From positions 430,331 through 494,330 of the forward strand of contig QPMI01000457.1 in the NCBI GenBank assembly GCA_004431415.1: 64,000 nt of DNA, given 5' to 3'. This document shows, piece after piece, positions 29,763 to 63,360 of the stretch. The notes under the pieces are model-generated. The model was not told where the DNA came from. It saw only the letters and a program-made list of their open reading frames with translations, and searched no databases. A program made the translations under genes and the position numbers. The stretch's first letter is position 1; the number at the start of each line of letters is the position of its first letter. Source of the DNA: Cyanophora paradoxa CCMP329 (lineage: Eukaryota; Plantae; Glaucophyta).

Positions 29763-32700
29763 CTACAGGTAGAGCGAGGCGGCGAAGACAATGTCGCGCT
29801 TCAGCTTCGCGATGCCGGCCTGCGCGCGCGAGCGGCGTCAGATCAGAGGCGGCCGAACAAACACAGGGGACGCGGGCGGCCGGCGCGCCTCGAACTTGGC
29901 CACGAGCTCCTCGTTGCCGATCGCCTTCGAAGCGTCCACCATCTGCGAGCGAAGCGGGCGGGCGGGCGGGCGGGCACGGTCAGCACCCCCGCGCATCCTT
30001 CCTTCTTCGTTCGCCCTGGCGCGCCTGGCGGAGGAACTCCTCGAGGCGGCGCATGGCGCGGATGATCGACCCCTCGAAGATCTCCGTCATCTTCGCCCGC
30101 CCCCGCCCCCCGCCCGTTCAGCTCCAGCGTAAATGAACAGAATAAAACGAAGACGGCGCGCCTTGCAGACGTCGGCGAACTTGGCGCCCCTGCACCACGC
30201 GTGCACGACCTCCATCATGTCCGGCTTGAACGACTGCACGTACTCCTCGACGTCGAGCCCCAGCTTGCACTCCTGCGCCACGCTCGCGATCCGCCGCGCC
30301 GCCTCCTGCAGGATCCGCAGCGGCGCCGCCAGCTCCTCCCGCAGCCGCGTCGTCTCCTTGCTCTTCTCCTGGTACACCAGGCACGAGCAGAGCGCCACGC
30401 ACTGCTCCACCTGCGCGGCCGCGTCAGCCGCAGGAGAGCGCGTGAGCGCGGCGCGGGCGCCTGGAGTTCGTTGAAGACGCCGTTGAAGAGGAGCTCGGTG
30501 GCGAGGAGCTCGTCGGCGGTGGAGACCTCGCAGGCCACGCGGCCCTTGACCTCCACGACGCCCTCCCCCGACGCGAACCCGAGGCGCCGCAGCACGCGCC
30601 GCCGGTACCGGAGCTCCTCCTTGAAGATAATGTCCGACGACTGCTTCATCTCCTTCTTGACCGCCTTGCACTGCGCGTCCAGCTCCATCTTCCGCTCGTA
30701 CGCCGCCAGGCGCTCCTTCATGTCGGGCGCCTTGAAGGCGGCCTCGCCCCCGAGGCGCTCCTGCACGGCGTCCAGGCGCTTGTACAGCTTCTTGAAGGAG
30801 GGCTCCTGGATGTTCATGTCCGTCACGGGGTTCAGGAGCGGCAGGCCGTCCGGGAACCGCCTCATCACCTCCGCCACCGTCTTCCCTGCACGCGCCCCGC
30901 GTCGGCCGAGCGAGCGAGCGAGCCGGACGGGCGGGGGCGGACCGAGGTTGGCGCGGGCCTCGGCGGGCCGCAGGTCCTTGGGGACCATGACGCGTACCTG
31001 GCTGAAGTCCGCCACGAGGGCGAGCAGGAGGGGCACCACCTGCCAGTCCCCCGCCTCCCCGGCCGGGCACGGCCGCGGCCGCGCGTTCGCCGCCACCGCC
31101 GACGACCCCTGCACCGCGCACTGCCGCCCGCCCCGCTCAAGACAGAGAAGCGAACGAACGAACGAGCAAGGCGCCGGCCGGGCGGCACCTTGAGGAGGGC
31201 GTCGACGACGTAGACGGCGTCGCGTGCGGCGTCCTTCTCGGCCCCCGCGTCGCCCTTCTTCGTGAAATTGATGACGACGCCCCAGCCCCAGTCGTTGCGC
31301 GCGTCCTTCACCCGCACCAGCCGCCCCGGCTGCAGGAACGGCAGCGCGTACAGCGGCTTCGTCGTCCACTCCCGGATCTGCGCACGCGACGGCGCCCCGC
31401 CGACCCGGTCAGGCAGGCGGCGCCGCGCCCGACCGGCTCGCTCGGCAGAGCGGAGAGAGGGCGCTGGGGCCCGGGCTCGCCTCGGCGGCGATGTCGGCGA
31501 ACTGCTTCAGAACGGCCGCGTACTCGGCCACCGTCTCCTCCCTGAGGCACGCTCAGAACTCAGAGAGAAGGCGGGAAGGCGCGGCGCGGCGCGGCGCACC
31601 CCGGGACGACCACCGCGTCCCGCTCAGCCTCCAGCTCCGACAACTCTGCGCCGGGCGGCGCTCGCAGGCCGGTCGCCCTCCCGCGGGGCGGGCGGCGCAC
31701 TGGACTGGAGCTGGGGGATCTGCCGGTCGGACTGGAACTGCCCGAAGGAGCGCCGGATCACGTAGTCGGGGTCCGCCTCCTCCACCTGGCTCAGATGAGA
31801 TCAGAACGGATCAGGTCGGATCGGATCTGAGCCGGGCCGGGCGGGGCGCACCCTCATCAGATTCAGGAGCATGTTGTACCCCAGGTGGAAGGAGCTCGTG
31901 AGCGGGTCCGCCTGGCCCTGCGCCCCGCCGGCCCCGCCCCGGGTCGGACCGGACCGAAGGAGGCCGAGCCCGCAGCCGGGCCGGGCCGGGGGTACGGCAG
32001 GGCGCGAACCATGAGCATGCCCTTAGCCACCGCCGGCTCCATTTTCTCGTCCACCTGCGGGCGGGCGTGCGGGCCGGGCCGGCGGCGTCAGCAGTCGGCC
32101 GAGGCGAACCGGCGCGAGCGCGAGAGGTCGAGCGGGGCGCGCCATGAGGATGACGATGCCGCGGTCGTCGAGGCCTCGCCGCCCCGCACGCCCGCTCATC
32201 TGAATGTACTCGCCCCCGGAGACCTGCGCGGCGCCCGCTCATGATCAGACGCGGCCCGAGCCGCCAGAAAGGCAGCCGCGCTCGCTCGCTCGCGCGGGCG
32301 CGCCCATCGGAAGTTCTCGCCGTCGAACTTGCGGACGGAGGTGAAGACGACGGTCTTGGCGGGCATGTTGAGGCCGATCGAGAACGTCTCCGTCGCGAAG
32401 AGGGCCTTCAGGAGGCCCTCCTGGAACAGGATCTCGATCACCTGCGCCCTCCCTTAGCCTCGGCGACTACTCGGCGAGGCGAGGCGAGGCGAGGCGAGGC
32501 GAGGCGAGGCGAGGGACCTCCTTGAGGATGGGGAGGAGGCCGGAGTGGTGGATCCCGATCCCCCGCTTCAGCAGCGGCAGGATGTGCTCCACCTGCGCTG
32601 AGGCTCAGGCTCGGGCTTAGGCTTAGGCTCAGCTTTCTCGCCTGGGGGATGTGCTTGTCGTCCTCGGAGAGGGAGTCGATGGCGTTGTTGAAGACCGTCT

Positions 32701-44200: not shown

Positions 44201-45419
44201 ATGGGCGCCGGCTCGTCCGCGCGGTCGCGCTATCCCGCCGCCGAGATCGTGGGTGAGGTGGAAGTGACGCCCCCGCCGAAGAAGGGGCCCAGGCCTCCGC
44301 CCCCGCGCGCCCCGCCCGCCCCGATGCCCCCGCTCGTCGAGGTCCGCTTCCTCACGTGCACTCGTAGTTCAGATCTAAATCTGTCGCCCGTGCCGCTGAG
44401 CTTCGAGCTGAGCGCGGTGCCGCCGCAGCCGCTGCCGCCGGCGCCGCCGGTGCTGTACGCGTTCGAGGCGTGCCCGGAGTGCGCCCGCCTGGAGCTGAGC
44501 CTGCGCCACTGCAAGATCCGCTACGAGCGCCGCGAGGAGGAGCCGCTCGAGCTCCGCCTCCCCTGGTGCGCCCACGACCGCCGCGCCCGAGCCGGTTCGG
44601 GGTCCAGCCGGCCTGGCCTGCCCGCAGCACATTCCTAGAGCCAGCTCCCATCGCTTCTCTAAAACGAATGCCCGCCCCCTTCTAGGTACGTCGTGACGAC
44701 GGAGCGCCCCGTCCCGCGGCTGCACCACGGCCGCCACGTCCTCGAGGACCTCCCCTCTATCCTCCAGCACATCGCGCGTACCCCTCCCCAGCGCCGGCTC
44801 GACGTACCCCCTTCCCGACTGACTTCGCCCCCGCAGGAGAAGCTCCCCGGCGCCGCTGCCCTGCTGCCCATCGTTCGCCCATCTACCCCCCCCCCCCCCC
44901 CCCCCTCCGGATTCGAACGCGGGCCGCAGGACTTCGAGGCGCGGGCGCGCGTGCGCGTGTTCCTCCTGTCGGCCTCGAACCGCCTCACGGCCCTCGTCCG
45001 CGGCGCCGTCGCCGCCGCCGCCGCCGCGATTGCGAGCGCCGAGGGCGGGGACGGGGCGGCGGAGGCGGCGGCGGCGCCCGCTGCGCGCCCCGTGGGGGAG
45101 CTGGCCTCAGAGATCGGGCGGCGCTGGGCGAGCTGGCGGCGCAGGCGGACCCTATGGGCGCGCCCCTCTTCGCGTTCCTGCCCTCCGCCGCCGACTTCTG
45201 CCTGCTGCCCTCGTCTGGGAGCTCCGCGCCGCCCTCGCCGCCGCCGGCGGGCCGCCTCTGCCCCTCCCGCCCCGCCTCCAGGCCTGGCTCCCCGCCGCCG
45301 AGGCCGCCGCCGCCGCCCTGGGCGTCCGCGAGCCGCCCGCGGGGCCCCTGCTTCAGCTCGCCGCCGCCCGCCTCAAGAAGGCCCCGCGCCCCGGCCCCGC
45401 GGCCCCGCGCGCCCCTTAG
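44201..45419 (+). CDS. Glutathione S-transferase-like protein with CxxC, possibly N-myristoylated
   Basis: MGAGSS; VLYAFEACPECARLELSL; VPRL..G..LEDLPSILQHI; PSAADFCLLPLV. Two 1-nt homopolymer deletions (~45117, ~45209) are restored in the duplicate copy. Confidence 0.7.
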
Positions 45420-48030
45420 CAGCCCCGCTCGTCCACACGTTGACGTTGCTGCTACAGCCAAACGCGATTCATTCGACCCCAGGCCCCTCGAGCTCTAGAT
45501 CTAGATCAGATCTCGATCTATTGATCATGATCATCGATACTGCTGCCGTGCGCGCCCCGTACACGTGCACGCTAGTAAAAAGGGGCCGACTCGGCGAACT
45601 GATCTAATTACGACCTAGCTGAGACCTGTTATATTTGATCGGCCACCGCTCTAATATTTCTTCGTGTCTGTCATCCCCTGTCACTAGATCTGCTCAGTCT
45701 GGTTCGTTTATTATCTCTTCTCGATCTGTCTCCGTGTCTTTCCTTTTTTATAGTCGATTTTGGCTCTTTGTCCAGTCTTTCTGCGTGCTCTTGTCTTAGT
45801 TCTTTTGCTTTTTTTGCCCCTGTGCCCCCTGGGCAGCCCCCGCAGTGCTGGTGCCTAGAGACTGTGGCCGGTAATTCACCAAAAAAATAATTCCGTCGAC
45901 CTAATTGCGATCTAACTGCGATCTAATTCAAATAGGTCTCAGTTAGATCGCAATTCGATCGCCGCTGCCCGCGGCCGGCCCGGCGGGGGCTGCCCCGCGC
46001 TCCCCCGCCGCCCGGCCAGCCCCCACCCCCGCCCCAACCTCTTCTAGCCTCGAGCTCCTCTTTCGAATTCTAGCCGATCGCGAGCGCCTCGAAAACAGCT
46101 CGCGATCGCCTTTAGCTATAGCTAGGCCTGGCGCCAGCCTGGCGCCGGCGTCTGACGGCTAGCGCTCGCCCGGCCGCGGGCCACCCGGTGACCGCCTTCA
46201 AGGCTTCTGGAGCTCTGCTTTTCTTCCATTTGAACGGACGCAACGTTTTCAAGGCTTCTGGAGCTCTGCTTTTCTTCCATTTGAACGGGCGCAACGTTAA
46301 CGGTCCTTCAAGTTTGCTCCTTTCCCTGACCTCTAGATCCCCGGATTAATGATCAAGCCATTGATATTGCCCCGAAATGGAACGTGAATTTCCCTTCCCC
46401 CGACCCCGCGCGCAGCAGCGTGCACGATATCGATCTAGCACGACCCCTTACGAGCGCGCGCCGCAGCGGGCCCTTCATCTATTCCAGTCTTTCCTTTCCC
46501 ACCTTCGCCCCGCGGCCGGGCCCCCAATTGCAACCCACCGCCCCCCCCCCCCCCCCCCCACCGCCCCCCCCCACCCCCACCCCCCCCCTCAGAGATCGGG
46601 GCGGCGCTGGGCGAGCTGGCGGCGCAGGCGGACCCTATGGGCGCGCCCCTCTTCGCGTTCCTGCCCTCCGCCGCCGACTTCTGCCTGCTGCCCCTCGTCT
46701 GGGAGCTCCGCGCCGCCCTCGCCGCCGCCGGCGGGCCGCCTCTGCCCCTCCCGCCCCGCCTCCAGGCCTGGCTCCCCGCCGCCGAGGCCGCCGCCGCCGC
46801 CCTGGGCGTCCGCGAGCCGCCCGCGGGGCCCCTGCTTCAGCTCGCCGCCGCCCGCCTCAAGAAGGCCCCGCGCCCCGGCCCCGCGGCCCCGCGCGCCCCT
46901 TAGCAGCCCCGCTCGTCCACACGTTGACGTTGCTGCTACAGCCAAACGCGATTCATTCGACCCCAGGCCCCTCGAGCTCTAGATCTAGATCAGATCTCGA
47001 TCTATTGATCATGATCATCGATACTGCTGCCGTGCGCGCCCCGTACACGTGCACGCTAGTAAAAAGGGGCCGACTCGGCGAACTGATCTAATTACGACCT
47101 AGCTGAGACCTGTTATATTTGATCGGCCACCGCTCTAATATTTCTTCGTGTCTGTCATCCCCTGTCACTAGATCTGCTCAGTCTGGTTCGTTTATTATCT
47201 CTTCTCGATCTGTCTCCGTGTCTTTCCTTTTTTATAGTCGATTTTGGCTCTTTGTCCAGTCTTTCTGCGTGCTCTTGTCTTAGTTCTTTTGCTTTTTTTG
47301 CCCCTGTGCCCCCTGGGCAGCCCCCGCAGTGCTGGTGCCTAGAGACTGTGGCCGGTAATTCACCAAAAAAATAATTCCGTCGACCTAATTGCGATCTAAC
47401 TGCGATCTAATTCAAATAGGTCTCAGTTAGATCGCAATTCGATCGCCGCTGCCCGCGGCCGGCCCGGCGGGGGCTGCCCCGCGCTCCCCCGCCGCCCCGG
47501 CCAGCCCCCACCCCCCGCCCCAACCTCTTCTAGCCTCGAGCTCCTCTTTCGAATTCTAGCCGATCGCGAGCGCCTCGAAAACAGCTCGCGATCGCCTTTA
47601 GCTATAGCTAGGCCTGGCGCCAGCCTGGCGCCGGCGTCTGACGGCTAGCGCTCGCCCGGCCGCGGGCCACCCGGTGACCGCCTTCAAGGCTTCTGGAGCT
47701 CTGCTTTTCTTCCATTTGAACGGACGCAACGTTTTCAAGGCTTCTGGAGCTCTGCTTTTCTTCCATTTGAACGGGCGCAACGTTAACGGTCCTTCAAGTT
47801 TGCTCCTTTCCCTGACCTCTAGATCCCCGGATTAATGATCAAGCCATTGATATTGCCCCGAAATGGAACGTGAATTTCCCTTCCCCCGACCCCGCGCGCA
47901 GCAGCGTGCACGATATCGATCTAGCACGACCCCTTACGAGCGCGCGCCGCAGCGGGCCCTTCATCTATTCCAGTCTTTCCTTTCCCACCTTCGCCCCCGC
48001 GGCCGGGCCCCCAATTGCAACCCACCGCCC
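45106..48030 (+). repeat. Near-identical ~1.485-kb tandem duplication (GST 3' exon plus flank)
   Basis: Identical ORFs offset by 1484-1486 nt (46112/47598, 46377/47863); the junction lies in a poly-C tract. Confidence 0.95.
45601..45960. mobile_element. MITE-like foldback (second copy at 47085-47444)
   Basis: About 30-bp imperfect inverted repeats GATCTAATTACGACCTAGCTGAGACCTGTT / AATAGGTCTCAGTTAGATCGCAATTCGATC around a pyrimidine-rich core. Confidence 0.5.
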
Positions 48031-48207
48031 CCCCCCCCCCCACCGCCCCCCCCCCACCCCCCCCCCCCCCACCCCCACCCCCCACCCCACCCCCACCCCC
48101 ACAATTGCAACCCCCTGCTGTACATATATTCATATTATATATTATATTAGCTTCACACACACACACATATATATATAGCAGTGCACGCCGGCGCGCGCGC
48201 GCGCGCG

Positions 48208-50693: not shown

Positions 50694-52393
50694 CCAACCG
50701 ACAGTCCGGTAGACTTAAGTCTTTGGCGCGGTTTTCCCAAACACAGCACGCCGGCCCGAGTCAGCTCCTGCCGGCGGCTGCCTATATTTAACAAATATAT
50801 GCAGTTAACCGTATATACCCAAATATATAATTCTTTTACTCAAGACTTGCGTGACCTCACGCTCTTGGTGATTGGCCAGGCGCACGTGTGCCTCACGTGT
50901 GCCGCCCATCAGCACTACCCCTCGCCTTCGTGCGCACCAACTTTCCGCCCGGCTAGCTCGCTCCGCTCGCTCCAGCGCTCGGCCTTCGCGCGCTCCACGT
51001 GCTCGGGACGCATGTGCGACGCTCTCCCTCGCTTGTCGCCGCCCGCCGCAGACAAACGCTCATCGAAGGCGATCCTGCGGCGCGCGTCTTCCGTCAACGC
51101 TCTCCCCGTGCTTAAGATGCATGTAACAAGCTCTAGACGTGCCGGTGCGCCAGGCCTGCCGCTGGATCGGTCCCGGTTGTTCGAATCGCGGTTTTCGCCC
51201 ATCCGGCGCGGTTTCGCCGCCCCGGTGCCGCCCGTGTCCCCGGGTGTGTTTCCCCATCCTTGTGCATGCTTTAGAACACCGCTGCATGCCCAGAAAGAGT
51301 GCCGCACTCGTGAAAGAAAGTTCGAGGTGCCTTGGACACGGGCCACACGGGCGAGCGCTACATCGAAGGGGGGGCCGGGCGAGCGGTGCCAGAAGCTAGT
51401 AAACATGCCTACGTACGCCTCGGAATGGCGCTGCGTGCGATTCCGGCCCGGGGCCGCCGCCAAGGTGAAGGACTGCGCCTGGGTGGCGGTGGTGGTCCAT
51501 CAGCCGGCGGCGAACTGGTCGAAGAAGAGAACGGAAAGGAAGTATAGCACCTATACATCATGAAACGACGATGCGCGACCGGCGGGCGAGCCCCCCGTCG
51601 TCGGGCGGTCAAGGACTCCGCGGTGCTGCGCACGCGGAGGCAGTCAGGTTGGCTGCCCTACGTGCAGGCAGCGCGCTGGCTTACGAGTCGTTTCTATATC
51701 CTTAGATGCATCGTTTGTGTGTCTCGGAGCCGAATGGCGCGCGGCATTGTCTCGGTCTGCACATGGCGGGAGGCGACATGTCTCAGGGTTCGGAGGCGAC
51801 GCAGGCGATCTGCTCACGCACCGACATGATGTAGAGCATCTAGAGATGCCTGGGAAGTGTCGCTGCCAGCGCCCGCGATGGGCGCAGCGGACTCCGACGT
51901 CCCTCCCGCGGCATTTCCTTCTGCGCCTTGGTTAGCCTACGTGCGGTAGGGGCGTGACTGCGAGCAATAGGCATGAAAGCATACCATAAGTGGATGTAGC
52001 TGGGTGCGGCTGGGCTGGCACGTGGGCAGAAGAAGATGACTTTCGAACTGCGGCCACCGCCATGCCTAGCCTCCTCTTTGGCCATTGCTAGAGCTGCCTA
52101 GCGTGCGTAGGAGGCGGATCGCTGTCGCTTATGCAGCTAGGCTGCTCAGGCCGCTCGCTGCCACGCACGAGGTCGCGGGGGTACGAGCGCGAAGGAAAGT
52201 TTGCCGTACCCACAAAGTTGAGTTGGAATTTGCATACTACTGCGAGTCGAGTCAAAAAGTCCGAGTCAAAAACTCGGGCGTTTTGCCTGATTGGTCAAAT
52301 AAACTCAATCCACCGGCGCAGGTACCGGTCCTGTTGGACCGGCGTGCTGTGAAAATCGCGCCAAAGACTTAAGTCTACCGGACTGTCGGTTGG
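50694..52393. mobile_element. Non-autonomous DNA transposon with long TIRs
   Basis: CCAACCGACAGTCCGGTAGACTTAAGTCTTTGGCGCG(G/A)TTTTC..CAGCACGCCGG is inverted at 50694 and 52393. No transposase or TSD recognised. Confidence 0.8.
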
Positions 52394-55136: not shown

Positions 55137-55620
55137 ATGCGGTAAGCATTGATTTCAGCTACGTTACAACCGAAGTACGGCTGCCACATCGGTGCTCTTG
55201 AGACCGATGGCTGCCAATGGTTGCGTACCGAACGCTCAGACCGAGCGCCGCCGAGGTAGCCGGCGGTGCTAACGCCTCAGCTAGCTAGATCGCGTGCTCT
55301 AGCTAGTTCTCCGACCGCCGGGTGCCGCCGTTGAGCCTTGCTGGTGCGGTGGTCGGACGGGTACCCCTGCGAGTAGTTCCCCCGGGCAAAGTCGCCGGGG
55401 CAAAGTCGCCGGGGCAAACTTGCGGGGCGAAGTCGCGGTTTCCGGAGCGCAGGATCTGGAGCTGTGTTCTGCTAGCGTCCAAGTGCTGTCGGCGTGGCAA
55501 GCGGTCAAAGTGCTGTCGGCGTGGAAGCGTGGCACGTGGCGCTCGAAAAGGTGCGCCGGAGGCCTTCTTTCCGCACCCATAGCGGCCTTGCGCGTGCGTC
55601 CGTGCGGCCTCCCTTGACAG
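55137..55620. repeat. Repeated promoter/5'UTR-like cassette, copy 1
   Basis: GGGCAAAGTCGCCG x2-3, AAGTGCTGTCGGCGTGG x2, ending in the acceptor CCCTTGACAG. Confidence 0.9.
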
Positions 55621-55829
55621 GAGCGTCTCTCGCGCGGGGCAGCTCCGACAGCGGAGTAGGCAGTCGGCTGCTTCTTCAGGCGCGGCGGTCTCGGCGATCG
55701 CTACTGCGATGTCGCGGAGCCAAACCGCTCCGTCGAGGTGAGCGTTTCGCGGACTTGCGGTACTACCCGTGGGCATCCAGGACCCTGAAGAGACGCAAGG
55801 TACTTGTCGCTTTTGCGACCAGGATGCCA

Positions 55830-56710
55830 TACCATAGAAAACCCTGTGCAGTTCCTGTGCGAGGCATGGCTGTGCGATTCACGATCAATGTTCGGAGTCG
55901 TGGCCGAAGCGTTAGTGGCCGATGTGTGCCGTGAGTATTTCGTGCCCAAATCCAATGTAGCGCTGTATTGGTACAACCCAGAAACCAATGGATTCGAGCG
56001 GCCGGTGCGAAAGTTCCTTGCGTCTGACGATGATTTCTGATGCGGCTTCCGCGAATTCACGCGTCGCGTGCATGCGCACAGACATCGAAACCACAGGGAC
56101 CATCTCCAGGCGATCTCTTCTACCTCACGGCGACCAATTTCCGCCGGGCGGAGCCCGCACGATACCTGGCAAGATTGGCCGCCCGTTTCTCAAAGGCACC
56201 AGCGACGGCAGCGACGCAGAACAGCGATGCCTAGATATAACTTCGCTCGTGCCGCCACCAGCTCGACACGCGCGACTCCTTTGTCTGCGCGCGACGCACC
56301 AGTCGAGAATATTAATGAAGGAAACAGCTCCGTAGCGGTGCATGTTGTAGCGACGATTGGAGAATTATGTCAGGTGCCCATTAATCCCGTTTCAGAGACA
56401 TTTCTTACAGAATTAATGGGCCTGTGCAGATCTTGTGCAAGTCAATGATCCGGATTCGGGGTCGTGGCCGACGCGCTGCTGGCGCGGGCGTGCAGCGAGT
56501 TTCTCGTACCGAAAAACAATGTAGCGCTGTATTGGTTCAACCCAGAAACCAGTGGATTCGAGCGCCCGGTGCAAGCTTTCTTTGCGTCTGACGATGATTT
56601 CTGATGCGGCTTCCGGATCCGCGAATTCACGCGTGCGCGTGCATGTGCACAGACATCGAAACCTCAGGGACCATACCGGGTGATTTCTTCTACCTCGCGG
56701 GCGACCAGTT
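55830..56710 (+). pseudogene. Two tandem copies of the orphan LYWxxP domain (no H3 tail)
   Basis: NVALYWYNPETNGFERP-intron-TSKPQGPSPGDLFY and NVALYWFNPETSGFERP-intron-TSKPQGP; same intron position as the minus-strand copies. Confidence 0.6.
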
Positions 56711-57132
56711 CCGCGGGATCCGGAGAACGAGCGCAGGCCTCGAACTACCTGTGCGCGAATGCGAGCCATGATTGCTCTGGAAAACATCCGCTCAATGGCG
56801 ACGTATAGTGCTAGCTAGCTTCATTATTCCTGATGCACTACGCGTACGGCGCCGGCTTTCGTCCGAATACGAATTCGACCAGCATGTATATTCTCTAGTG
56901 GTTTTCGCATACATGGCTCTCTAGAGAATTCGAACTCTTCGATTTATGCGACCGCTAGCGCCCGGCAGCGTTGTCCCAAGGCCGATACGCTCATTTGCGC
57001 AAAGGATTCGAATTAAGAAAAAATACAGCAATCTCTGCGCAGACGAATTCGAATCTCTGTTCCGCTCAGCGGCTAGCTATAGCGTGCATGCGCCGGCGGC
57101 CACGACTTCGAATAAGATGCAGCTGTCGGCCG

Positions 57133-57802
57133 CTAGGGGCCTTGAAACGGGCAATAGCTAGATCCGAAAACGGTCGCCAGGAAGGGCGCTGTCTCGACTT
57201 CTGGGATCACCGAATCCCTCGCGACGTAGTACAGATCATCCGGGGATGGCCCTGGACTCGACCTCTGTGCACGCGCAAGCGGAATTCGCGAATGCCGCAT
57301 CATGATCAGAAATCGAGGGAAGACGGAAAGATATCTTGCACCGGCTCGAAGTACTCGGCAAAGAACTCGAGGTAAATGAAGCACCGACTTGCTGGGTCGT
57401 ATCGATACATCATCAGCGCATCAGGGTGCGCGTGGTATGTGCTGCGGACGAGTTCACGGTACGCAGCTCCAGAAGATCTGTCTGCCACGTCTCTGAAACA
57501 TAGATCTTCAATCTAAACAGGCCCTGCGCTGTTTAGATTAGGGCACAAGCTTAAGGCATCGATGCAACCGTGGTCGCACCTGTCATATCATGATGCCCAC
57601 CGAAGGGGCCGGCAGTCCCGAGAAGCGCCACCTCGACAGAGCTGCCCGCGTTCTCGAGCCGCGATCGCGGCGCGTACAGAGCAATCACGCTTTCCGACTC
57701 GGCGACGCTGCTCTTCTGTTGGCTCTGGTACTGGTGCGCCGACCGCGGCTTCCGTGAAGTAACGAGCTGTTTTCGAATACGTTTTCCCCATGCGGTAAGC
57801 AT
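57133..57802 (-). pseudogene. Degenerate paralog of the H3-tail-mimic gene
   Basis: GKRIRKQLVTSRK...VAESESVIALYAPRSRLENAGSSVE; WQTDLL; YRYDPASRCF; GPSPDDLYYVAR; frameshifts in exon 2. Confidence 0.7.
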
Positions 57803-58361
57803 CGATCTCAGCTACTTTAAAACGAACTACGAGCAGCCAAGTGGTGGTCCTCGAGCTCGAGACCGATGGCCGCGTACCGAACGCTCAGACCGAGCGCCGC
57901 CGAGGTAGCCGGCGGTGCTAAAGCTCTAGCTAGCTAGATCGCGTGCTCTAGCTAGTTCTCCGACCGCGGGTGCCGCCGTTGGAGCCTTGCTAGTGTGGTG
58001 GTCGGACGGGTACCCCCCTGCGCGTAGTTCCCCCCGGGCAAAGTCGCCGGGCAAAGTCGCCGGGGCAAACTTGCCGGGCGAAGTCGCGGTTTCCGGAGCG
58101 CCGGATCTGGAGCTGTGTTCTGCTAGCGTCCGAAGTGCTGTCGGCGTGGCAAGCGGTCAAAGTGCTGTCGGCGTGGAAGCGTGGCACGTGGCGCTCGAAA
58201 AGGTGCGCCGGATGCCTTCTTTCCGCATCCATGGCCATGGCGGGGTTAGCTGCGCGTGCGTCCGTGCGGCCTCCCTTGACAGATGCGTCTCTCAGGGATG
58301 GATGCAACACGAGGAGACGAAACGCGAGTTCGAAGAGAGCGGCCAGGAGCGTGCGGAGAAA
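57789..58361. repeat. Repeated cassette, copy 2
   Basis: Same blocks as 55137-55620. The segment 56834-58361 also aligns with 60555-61870. Confidence 0.9.
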
Positions 58362-60300: not shown

Positions 60301-60772
60301 CTAGAATAGTTATAGCAATCAGAAGGTCAGGTACATATGCACGCAGACATGCAGCTTGTTAAAGATCCGGCCGCGGAGGTAAGGCTCCTAGGAAACGGTA
60401 CAGGTAGAATTTGTAATGTAGAACTTAGGTAAGGCTTGGTAGCCCGAGTGTATACGTAGTGGTATCCTGTTCGTGTCGTAGATTTGTTGTGTAATATGAT
60501 GTGTTAAATATATTTGAATCGTTGTGTAAAGTTTCGGATTTCCAAAATTCGTGCTGCACTACGGCGCCGGCTTCGACTTGGATCCGAGACGAATGCGACC
60601 AGCATGACTACTATATAGTTCACGTCTCCTGCTACTCAGAATTCGAATTCGAGAAAACAATACAGCAATCTCTGTGCAGAAGAATCTGTGTTTGGCTAGT
60701 GCGCATGGCGTCGGCGACCACGAATAAGATGCAGCTGCGGACCCGTACTAGGTCCTAGGGGATTTGCACTGG

Positions 60773-61402
60773 CTAGGATCCGGAAACGGTCGCCAGGAAG
60801 GGCACGTGCTCGATTTTCGGGACCACCTCATGCCTCGCGACGTAGAACAAATCATCCGGGAATGGCCCTGTACTCGACGCCTGTGCACATGCACGCGTGA
60901 ATTCGGGAATGCCGCATCAGAAATCAAGGTAAGAAGCAAAGATCGCTTGCACCGGCGGCTCGAAGCAACGGCTTTCTGGATCGTACCAATAGAGCGCAAG
61001 CCCGCTAACATTGCCTACAGAGTTGCATTCGCAGTCCAGGTCGAAGTAAGCCTGGATCAGAAGGTCTGTCTGCCACGACATAGAAACATCTATCCTGACG
61101 CGCACTGGCCCTGCCTGTTGAGATCAGGGCACACAATCAGGGGCAACGATGCCGGGTTGCAATTGCACGTGTGCACCCGTCTTTTCAGTGACGCGTAGCG
61201 GGGAAGGCCGGCAGTCACCGAGAACCCGCACCTCGACTGAGCTGCCCCCGTGCACGAGCCGCGGTCGTGGCGCGTATAGAGCAATCAGCACTTCCGACTC
61301 TGCGATCTGCTCTGCTGTCGGCGGCATGCGCAGCTGTCCCGCTGTCACTCCTGACTTCCTTGCAGCTTTGGTAGCGAGCTGTTTTCGAGGTACTTTCTGC
61401 AT
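60773..61402 (-). CDS. 146-aa protein with an N-terminal histone H3 tail mimic and an orphan (possibly ubiquitin-like) domain
   Basis: Exons 61402-61232, 61114-60953 and 60880-60773 are joined by GT-AG introns, all phase 0, with no stops. The protein starts MQKVPRKQLATKAARKSG. Confidence 0.75.
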
Positions 61403-61429: not shown

Positions 61430-61870
61430 ACCGAGCGCCGCCGTCTTTGGAGCCTTGCTGGTGCGTGGTCGAACGAGTACCCCCCGGCAGGAAGTTCCCC
61501 CCGGGCAAAGCCGCCGGGGCAAAGTCGCCGGGGCAAAGTCGCCGGAGCACTGTCGCGGTTTCCGGAGCGCCGGATCTGGAGCTGTGTTCTGCTAGCGTCC
61601 GAAGTGCTGTCGGCGGGGCAAGCGGTCAAAGTGCTGTCGGCGTGGAAGCGTGGCACGTGGCGCTCGAAAAGGTGCGCCGGATGCCTTCTTTCCGCATGCG
61701 CACCCATATATAGCGGCCTTGCGCGTGCGTCCGTGCGGCCTCCCTTGACAGTAGCGTCTCTCAGGGATGAATGCACACGAGGAGACGAAACGCAAACTCG
61801 AAGAGAGCGAACAGGAGGTTGATTATGAGCTTGAGACGGAGGAAAGCGGCCCGGCGCGTGCGGAGAAACG
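61430..61870. repeat. Repeated cassette, copy 3 (right-hand cargo truncated by the AT-rich insertion)
   Basis: Same blocks as copies 1 and 2. Confidence 0.9.
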
Positions 61871-63360
61871 TGCGCGAGACACATAGTAAAATGCGGAGTT
61901 TTAACCCTCGGCTTAATCTTAATTGATTTTGTTGATATATCTCGTATATTCTATTTCAATCAATCGATAATCTGTGTATATCTTATCGAATATTCAATTA
62001 TTTCGATTATTTTGTATTCTTTTCGATATTTTATCGTAAATTTCTCTTATTTTCCGATTAGTCTTACTGAGTTAATCGATAATCTGTATATATTTCCGAA
62101 TAATATAACTGAATCTCAATTAGATCTTGCCTCTGGTTAAAACTCCGCATTTTACTATGTGTGATTGGTCTAAAAGTTAATTGATTTAATCGATATTATA
62201 TTCATGTACTTTCTCGATTAAATTTAATTAAATTTAAATTCATTTAATCGGAAATATATCGCTTAACTCGATTAAGATCCATATTAGATTCATTTGTTTA
62301 ATAAAACAAATAGATCTCTTATTGAATCCAATCGTAATTATACATGAAACTTATATGATTTTATCATTGTTTTATTGAGTCTAAGGGGGGACCCTTAGGA
62401 ATTTAATGAATAATTGGGTGTCACAGGTGTCACAGGTCCATCCCATCGAAAGGGAAAATCACTCTTTATAGGGCTTGAGCTGGGATAAACCTGTGACACC
62501 TGTGACACATACCATATTCAGTAAGGACCTCTTATATTGTGAAAATCTCAGTGTTAGTTGGTGTAGTTGATTCAAAAAATGCATTTTATACTCTGATTCA
62601 TTGTTATTTCCTGTGAAATTTGAGTCAACTCAACCCACTTAGTCAACCCTTGCATTGAATTCGTAACAAAATCCATATACTATTACTACTTTTACGATTA
62701 ATATGAGTCAACCTTGAGTCCACTTTAATATAAATATTATATAATAGGGGGAATCAAGGGAGATGCTTACTAAATGCAGTGTTAGATTGATGGGATCATA
62801 GATGGGATCACAGTTATCGAAGCAATATAATATAGTTGAATATTCGATATCATAAGTTGATCGAAACGATAAGTATATGGTTATAAATCGCGATTTTTGA
62901 GTTATAATCGAATTTAATCGAATTAATTTTGAATTTCAAAACTCGCTTTAATCGTAATAGCGATCTATACACATTGAGATTCGTATATGTGATTGCAAGT
63001 TATTGTTATGTATGATATATGTGATTATATTCGACCGTCAGTGCATCGATTTGATAACTTGCTAGTGATCTATATTAAAAACTCACGTTTAATGGATTTT
63101 AATCGAATTTATAATCAAAATTCAAAATCGGTTTCATCGCGATTTGGAGTTACAGTTAGTGAAATTCCGATATGGCTCATAAGCGCTGTGACCGCCTTGA
63201 AATGCTCGATTTTATGACGTTTTAAGCGCATCGATTTGATAAGTTGGTGTTGAGATATCGTAGCAAACGTTAATATTGATTTTCTAGACGGGTACAGCAT
63301 TAATCTAGAAAAAACCGCGTTTTTTTTTTACTTTTCAAGTTTCACGGCGAACGAAGTAAA

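Follow-up and report, generated by a model that had tools for sequence, protein, structure and literature searches.

A histone H3 tail fragment set before an orphan domain in Cyanophora paradoxa and its possible role as a chromatin-enzyme decoy

Within the 64,000-nucleotide stretch of the Cyanophora paradoxa genome that we analysed (the window), a small minus-strand gene candidate, copy A, is predicted to carry a fragment of the histone H3 tail on an orphan domain that is not a histone, the combination of tail motif and non-histone protein that characterises histone mimics. Copy A is best read as a member of a young, repeat-associated and lineage-restricted family, and we tentatively suggest that its tail serves as a decoy for chromatin enzymes. 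This suggestion draws on the observed tail identity, the paralogy, the constraint in a domain core and the lack of outside relatives in our searches, together with a presumed splicing pattern, translation, fold and target. The parts of copy A are as follows.

61232..61402, minus strand: exon 1 of copy A, 57 codons holding the start codon, the H3 tail fragment, a linker and the first predicted strand; donor at 61231 is GT in 4/4 copies
61352..61396, minus strand: H3 tail fragment K14-S28 of copy A, 14/15 identical, A15V
61115..61231, minus strand: proposed intron 1, 117 nt, GT-AG, length divisible by 3, one TGA in frame, alternative boundaries possible
60953..61114, minus strand: exon 2 of copy A, 54 codons with a predicted strand, helix and two strands; the last 16 codons are the conserved family core
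60881..60952, minus strand: proposed intron 2, GT-AG, 72 nt long and in frame; a TGA occupies 60919-60917, the same position in 4/4 copies
60773..60880, minus strand: proposed exon 3, 35 codons plus TAG, open frame

Judged from the alignment, the match to the H3 tail is real. The minus-strand frame from 61402 starts with the 18 residues given in the original prediction, and residues 3-27 of the predicted protein align with H3 K14-P38 (best E 1.6e-4 with a 34-aa query). Residues 3-17 correspond to K14-S28 with the single change A15V, and the stretch P16-S28 is identical at 13/13 positions, a 13-mer whose chance expectation within the window is 3.5e-11, which bears out the earlier claim of 13 residues identical to H3 plus K14. 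The tail holds K14, K18, K23 and K27, which are K3, K7, K12 and K16 of the copy A protein, as well as S28, and is without K4 and K9. Beyond S28 the residues are altered and a decayed similarity to H3 runs on to P38 at about 61322. No remnant of H3 residues 1-13 was found in the 40 in-frame codons upstream of the copy A start, and no exon of copy A gave a histone-fold match in Pfam or the PDB, so that the alignment, the upstream frame and the exon-wise searches agree with what had been predicted about the residues present and the residues and fold absent. The tail also differs in codon usage, with a GC3 of 0.33 compared with 0.63-0.74 in the remaining gene and 1.0 in a conserved helicase domain of the same genome. 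This low GC3 would reflect either many silent changes tolerated while the residues were held or an AT-richer donor, such as an element-borne H3.

Exact 17-nt matches to the DNA that codes for the tail (codons P16-A21, preceded by an Ala codon), with no start codon, were observed at two further places in the window (chance 0.0002), one in each unit of a 1.49-kb tandem duplication at 45105-48076 with 99% identity, which could be an assembly duplication.

46087..46103, plus strand: relic of tail-coding DNA, 17-nt exact match
47573..47589, plus strand: second relic copy, within the 1.49-kb 99% tandem duplicate

The copy A exons (61402-61232, 61114-60953 and 60880-60773) join into 146 codons plus TAG with no internal stop. 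The intact three-exon reading frame of the original prediction therefore stands as far as the frame is concerned, which is open over 146 aa, but not for the exon structure, since at least 12 GT-AG models retain the same three motifs and neither splice appears in RNA contigs. Both introns begin with GTGC and end with ACAG, matching the RNA-verified introns of the neighbouring gene, GT is found at both donor sites in 4/4 copies (A, B, C and D), and a branch-like CTGAT at 61127-61123 precedes acceptor 1 in copy A, where paralog B has CTAAT. The mean intron in C. paradoxa measures 86 bp (PMC6704402), and the window as a whole has high GC, short introns and micro-exons. A DNA-run contig showed 0 differences from copy A over 60902-61212.

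Intron 2 is the best-conserved DNA of the family, with 82-89% identity to the paralogs, above that of exon 2, and a peak at 60875-60934. In A, C and D its first 11 codons align without gaps and run into a TGA at an identical position; B has the same stop, preceded by a 9-codon insertion. Because intron 2 is the best-conserved part and an RNA-type contig crosses it unspliced, a two-exon protein of 122 aa, ending at this in-frame TGA after 11 more codons, is a plausible alternative. A structured RNA was considered for intron 2 and discarded, with z about +0.3 to +1.2 and no match in Rfam. Read-through of TGA at both in-frame stops was judged unlikely because the first of these stops is TAA in paralog B, a difference that a branch-point CTRAT allows.

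The original prediction had named RNA sequencing across the two introns as a check, and among contigs of three RNA-type runs, which cannot show the absence of RNA, we saw neither the intron 1 nor the intron 2 splice. A single RNA-type contig lies on copy A (60811-61005, 195 nt, depth 3); it is identical to A and unspliced through intron 2, and as contigs carry no strand it may represent DNA, read-through from the neighbour, pre-mRNA or a genuine unspliced message. In the same run, the plus-strand neighbour extending from 58049 to about 60678 showed nine joints at depth 50-75. This expressed neighbour has several exons, among them micro-exons of 11-20 nt, and assembly indels break its frames; it converges with copy A, has a possible short poly(A) end at 60678 and gave no Pfam match in the pieces scanned.

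With short exon queries, to which all searches for relatives were confined and which limit their reach, no relative of the orphan domain was found outside the C. paradoxa genome. The exon 1 and exon 2 ORFs, searched separately, gave no match in a set of 5.8 billion entries, nor did exon pieces and exact DNA patterns in viral and metagenome contigs and phage genomes. In the ESM Atlas the exon pieces stayed below threshold, and an exact-protein look-up was blank. A profile of exon 2 pieces returned 7 matches among 1.84 billion proteins; the 5 examined were tandem-repeat proteins that had scored by summed short stretches, and the matches were rejected. Exon-wise searches of Pfam, the PDB, the Atlas and the 1.84 billion proteins, which have low power on split exons, yielded no ubiquitin-like or beta-grasp profile match. 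The beta-alpha-beta pattern of the original prediction fared unevenly: of two AlphaFold models of exon 2 pieces (pLDDT 51 and 48), the one with pLDDT 48 shows strand-helix-strand-strand, but a Foldseek search with this low-confidence, exon-only model found no match. A beta-grasp fold would thus be a guess from pattern, namely the order of the elements and a spacing judged by eye in paralog C. The C-terminal Gly-Gly of ubiquitin-like modifiers is absent from the copy A model, which ends in Ser-Gly-Ser.

Self-comparison of the window at the DNA level revealed three paralogs of copy A within 6 kb, along with three copies of a promoter/first-exon cassette.

57140..57791, minus strand: paralog B, whole-gene copy with 68.5% DNA identity and a drifted tail
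55643..56150, plus strand: paralog C, which holds the domain without a tail and is transcribed from the cassette upstream of it
56320..56720, plus strand: paralog D, a tandem, incomplete copy of the domain that lacks a tail
61431..61817, no strand assigned: cassette copy adjoining the start of A, 30 nt from the ATG
57972..58349, no strand assigned: second cassette copy, lying between B and the expressed neighbour; RNA shows a splice at 58202
55318..55631, no strand assigned: third cassette copy, upstream of C

The tail is unchanged in A, drifted in B and absent from C and D. With one homopolymer base discounted, the tail of B keeps G13, K14, R17-L20, T22, R26 and K27 in frame with the domain, and its basic stretch (K14, R15, R17, K18, R26, K27) is retained, whereas P16, A21, K23, A24, A25 and S28 are gone and the ARKS motif is lost. 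The A and B tails derive from the same DNA, and the tail must predate the A/B split because B carries it. Conservation of the tail in other copies, which the original prediction had looked for, accordingly holds in part at best; its placement of a multi-copy gene in a duplicated, repeat-rich zone was confirmed by the self-comparison and the adjoining repeats. In another run, an RNA-type contig joins the cassette exon end at 55550 to 55643 (GT-AG), and a tail-less family member is therefore transcribed, at low level. A variant at 61290 is seen in five more contigs of a DNA run, from which it follows that more family copies exist elsewhere. Over paralog B, contigs of the DNA run show 5 and 8 gaps, and indels of long-read origin probably disturb its frames. 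Between 55900 and 60100 the assembly disagrees with short-read contigs at many one-base indels, as many as 8 within 284 nt. Since indels against the short-read run occur in B, C and D and none in A over 60902-61212, it may be the assembly that breaks the frames of B-D, and apparent pseudogenes in this C. paradoxa assembly need polishing before being called broken.

The cassette is about 350 bp long with a core identity of 92-97% among its copies, and by sequence comparison its duplication is younger than the gene duplications. Its exon is spliced to two unrelated genes, namely the neighbour and paralog C; its other side adjoins the starts of A and B, and it may be a mobile bidirectional promoter. 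The other copies fire on the plus strand, and copy A would need reverse cassette activity. The cassette upstream of copy A is cut by a MITE-like element (61879-62162, with 41-nt terminal inverted repeats) that lies at the edge of AT-rich DNA (GC 0.30-0.39 to the end of the window); a second inverted repeat, of 35 nt, is found at 62418-62508. The description of copy A as repeat-borne is a reading of these surroundings: a duplicated cassette and a MITE-like repeat adjoin it, and a scan of flanking ORFs turned up no transposase or any further gene of a mobile element.

The final 16 codons of exon 2 are the only part with clear coding constraint; their substitution pattern points to purifying selection, with a pN/pS of 0.38 against each paralog and a pooled value of 0.46 (0.27-1.01), compared with 0.93 and 3.0 in the other frames. 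Elsewhere pN/pS was 0.80 for the whole of exon 2, 0.84 for the domain part of exon 1, 1.02 for exon 3, 1.16 for intron 1 and 0.65 for the first 14 codons of exon 3, none of them different from 1, and 1.14 for the tail against paralog B; misalignment at indels shifts such family values toward 1. On the A branch, 0 amino-acid changes occurred in P16-S28 where 2.2-5.5 would be expected under drift (P 0.004-0.11), a probability biased by the choice of copy A for its H3 match. The probability that copy A would have survived free of nonsense changes over this branch is about 0.12. CpG depletion does not mark the copy A region.

In the reading that we tentatively prefer, an ancestor would have captured DNA for the middle of the H3 tail and set it before a small orphan domain, and the family would have spread by local duplication. 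The protein would enter the nucleus and offer a free, nucleosome-independent K14-S28 peptide, which would compete with real H3 for the enzymes and readers of silent chromatin and so ease the silencing of the surrounding repeat-rich DNA. The tail-less or drifted B, C and D would then be decaying or repurposed members. The tail kept unchanged on the A branch, its AT-rich codons and the constraint in the exon 2 core suggest such a role; against it stand the unspliced state of the one RNA-type contig on A, the drifted tail of B, the tail-less C and D and the whole-exon pN/pS values that do not differ from 1.

The target of such a decoy would more plausibly be K14/K18/K23, through ubiquitin-linked DNMT1/SUV39 silencing, than K27. 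If the domain were ubiquitin-like, as its strand-helix pattern hints, the fusion would resemble an H3 tail ubiquitylated at K14/K18/K23, to which the DNMT1 RFTS domain and SUV39-type SET domains bind. A ubiquitylated lysine, however, has an isopeptide geometry that a linear fusion of tail and domain lacks, and the copy A tail has no K9, a residue on which RFTS and SUV39 likewise draw. A survey of the Cyanophora draft proteome also detected no Su(var) proteins (PMC5725981), which speaks against this reading. In known systems, K14, K18 and K23 are the lysines dual-ubiquitylated for DNMT1 recruitment, a signal of which PAF15 is a natural non-histone mimic (PMC7060239), and H3K14ub stimulates Clr4/SUV39 (PMC8443253). 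C. paradoxa has DNMT1/DNMT3, 32% CpG methylation and methylated repeats (PMC12344493). K27 and PRC2 are the less likely target because E(z) was not detected in the draft proteome of this organism and a host that silences repeats through DNMT1/DNMT3 CpG methylation fits a ubiquitin-type decoy better. In its full form the idea is quite unlikely: a gene would encode, in one chain, the K14-S28 peptide and a ubiquitin-like domain as a stand-in for the ubiquitylated H3 tail, would have been amplified in repeat-rich DNA so as to titrate DNMT1- or SUV39-type silencing machinery, and its copies would display different parts of the tail.

Two other accounts are nearly as likely as the decoy. It is possible, though somewhat unlikely, that function resides in the domain and that the captured basic piece of H3 is a nuclear-import or nucleic-acid-binding tag, for which any basic version would suffice. 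H3 tails contain import signals. Paralog B kept a basic stretch and lost P16, A21, K23, A24, A25 and S28, and its tail shares the reading frame of the domain provided that one homopolymer base is wrong; the domain core shows the clearest selection, and the tail-less C is transcribed. All of this would suit a tag; copy A, however, keeps P16, Q19, L20, A21, T22, A24, A25 and S28 unchanged, and none of these is needed for import. Similarly doubtful, and to be taken as seriously, is the account in which copy A is a duplicate that fell silent recently or drifts neutrally, its H3-tail DNA captured by chance by mobile DNA and its frame not yet hit. Consistent with drift, copy A lacks RNA support where its neighbour is spliced at depth 50-75 in the same run, its introns are conserved as much as its exons, survival free of nonsense changes has the appreciable probability given above, and non-coding relics of the tail DNA lie at 46087 and 47573. 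The cassette at A, moreover, is a younger insertion in the opposite direction and is cut by the MITE-like element, and roughly 21% of Cyanophora genes carry methylation and are for the most part silent (PMC12344493). Yet an open frame, an unchanged tail, conserved splice signals and a core pN/pS of 0.38 are jointly unlikely under drift, and the evidence on RNA comes from contigs of only three RNA-type runs, which cannot show its absence.

The emphasis of the original prediction, a K27 decoy or inhibitor of PRC2, now appears doubtful and, as an explanation of the tail, decidedly improbable. ARKS at K27 is intact with the 13 residues upstream of it, and an E(z)-like SET domain is known from another glaucophyte, but that domain models better with K9 than with K27 (PMC9018016), the residues past S28 are changed, ARKS is lost in B, and the survey of the Cyanophora draft proteome detected no E(z) (PMC5725981). 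That copy A is the remnant of a true H3 or H3-variant gene is scarcely credible: the register with H3 does continue weakly to P38, but the part downstream is common to the tail-less paralogs and has no histone-fold match in any exon, so the decayed H3 gene that the original prediction had named as its alternative is not upheld.

Copy A may work as histone mimics such as PAF15 and the viral ARKS proteins do but would not be an H3: it shares with H3 and its variants a nearly identical K14-S28 and the weak trace to P38, and differs in having neither residues 1-13 nor the histone fold. Arabidopsis VANC is a transposon anti-silencing factor that acts by sequence-specific DNA binding and involves no histone mimic; the likeness lies in the proposed role only, that of a repeat-associated protein relieving silencing. 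With the ubiquitin-like/beta-grasp superfamily copy A would share the order of predicted strands and helix, with the by-eye spacing in C, but it differs in giving no sequence or structure match with exon pieces and in having no C-terminal Gly-Gly. PAF15 (PCLAF; PMC7060239) is, like copy A, a non-histone protein with an N-terminal H3-like segment, and in both the spaced lysines could carry or replace the dual-ubiquitin signal read by the DNMT1 RFTS. PAF15 differs in being conserved and single-copy and in acting as an activator that depends on UHRF1 and binds PCNA, whereas copy A is a literal capture of K14-S28 that lacks the ARTK start and is joined to a multi-copy orphan domain, and homology between the two is not expected. 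The viral mimics (influenza NS1 ARSK and SARS-CoV-2 ORF8 ARKS; PMC11738798) likewise place an H3-tail motif on a non-histone protein and are proposed to divert chromatin enzymes. Theirs, however, are convergent motifs of 4-6 residues, in contrast to the captured 15-residue segment of copy A in a predicted intron-bearing nuclear gene, for which the viral contig, metagenome and phage searches with exon pieces found no viral relative.

Most histone mimics described so far are short motifs that arose convergently in viral proteins or in single-copy proteins of the host, and our literature search found no report of a fusion between an H3 tail and a ubiquitin-like domain. If the decoy reading is true, a gene family built from captured H3-tail DNA and an orphan domain would be a new anti-silencing route, in an early-branching relative of plants with CpG-methylated repeats. 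Should the tail be only a nuclear tag or drifting debris, copy A would still document repeated capture of histone-tail DNA in this genome, with far less consequence.

Two further features were observed elsewhere in the window. Inverted repeats of 46 nt (96%) at 50694-52393 enclose 1.6 kb with a 360-codon ORF that has no Pfam match, possibly a non-autonomous DNA transposon. On the minus strand at 30090-31121, an ORF piece contains a DSHCT domain, the C-terminal domain of Ski2-like helicases (E 2e-21).
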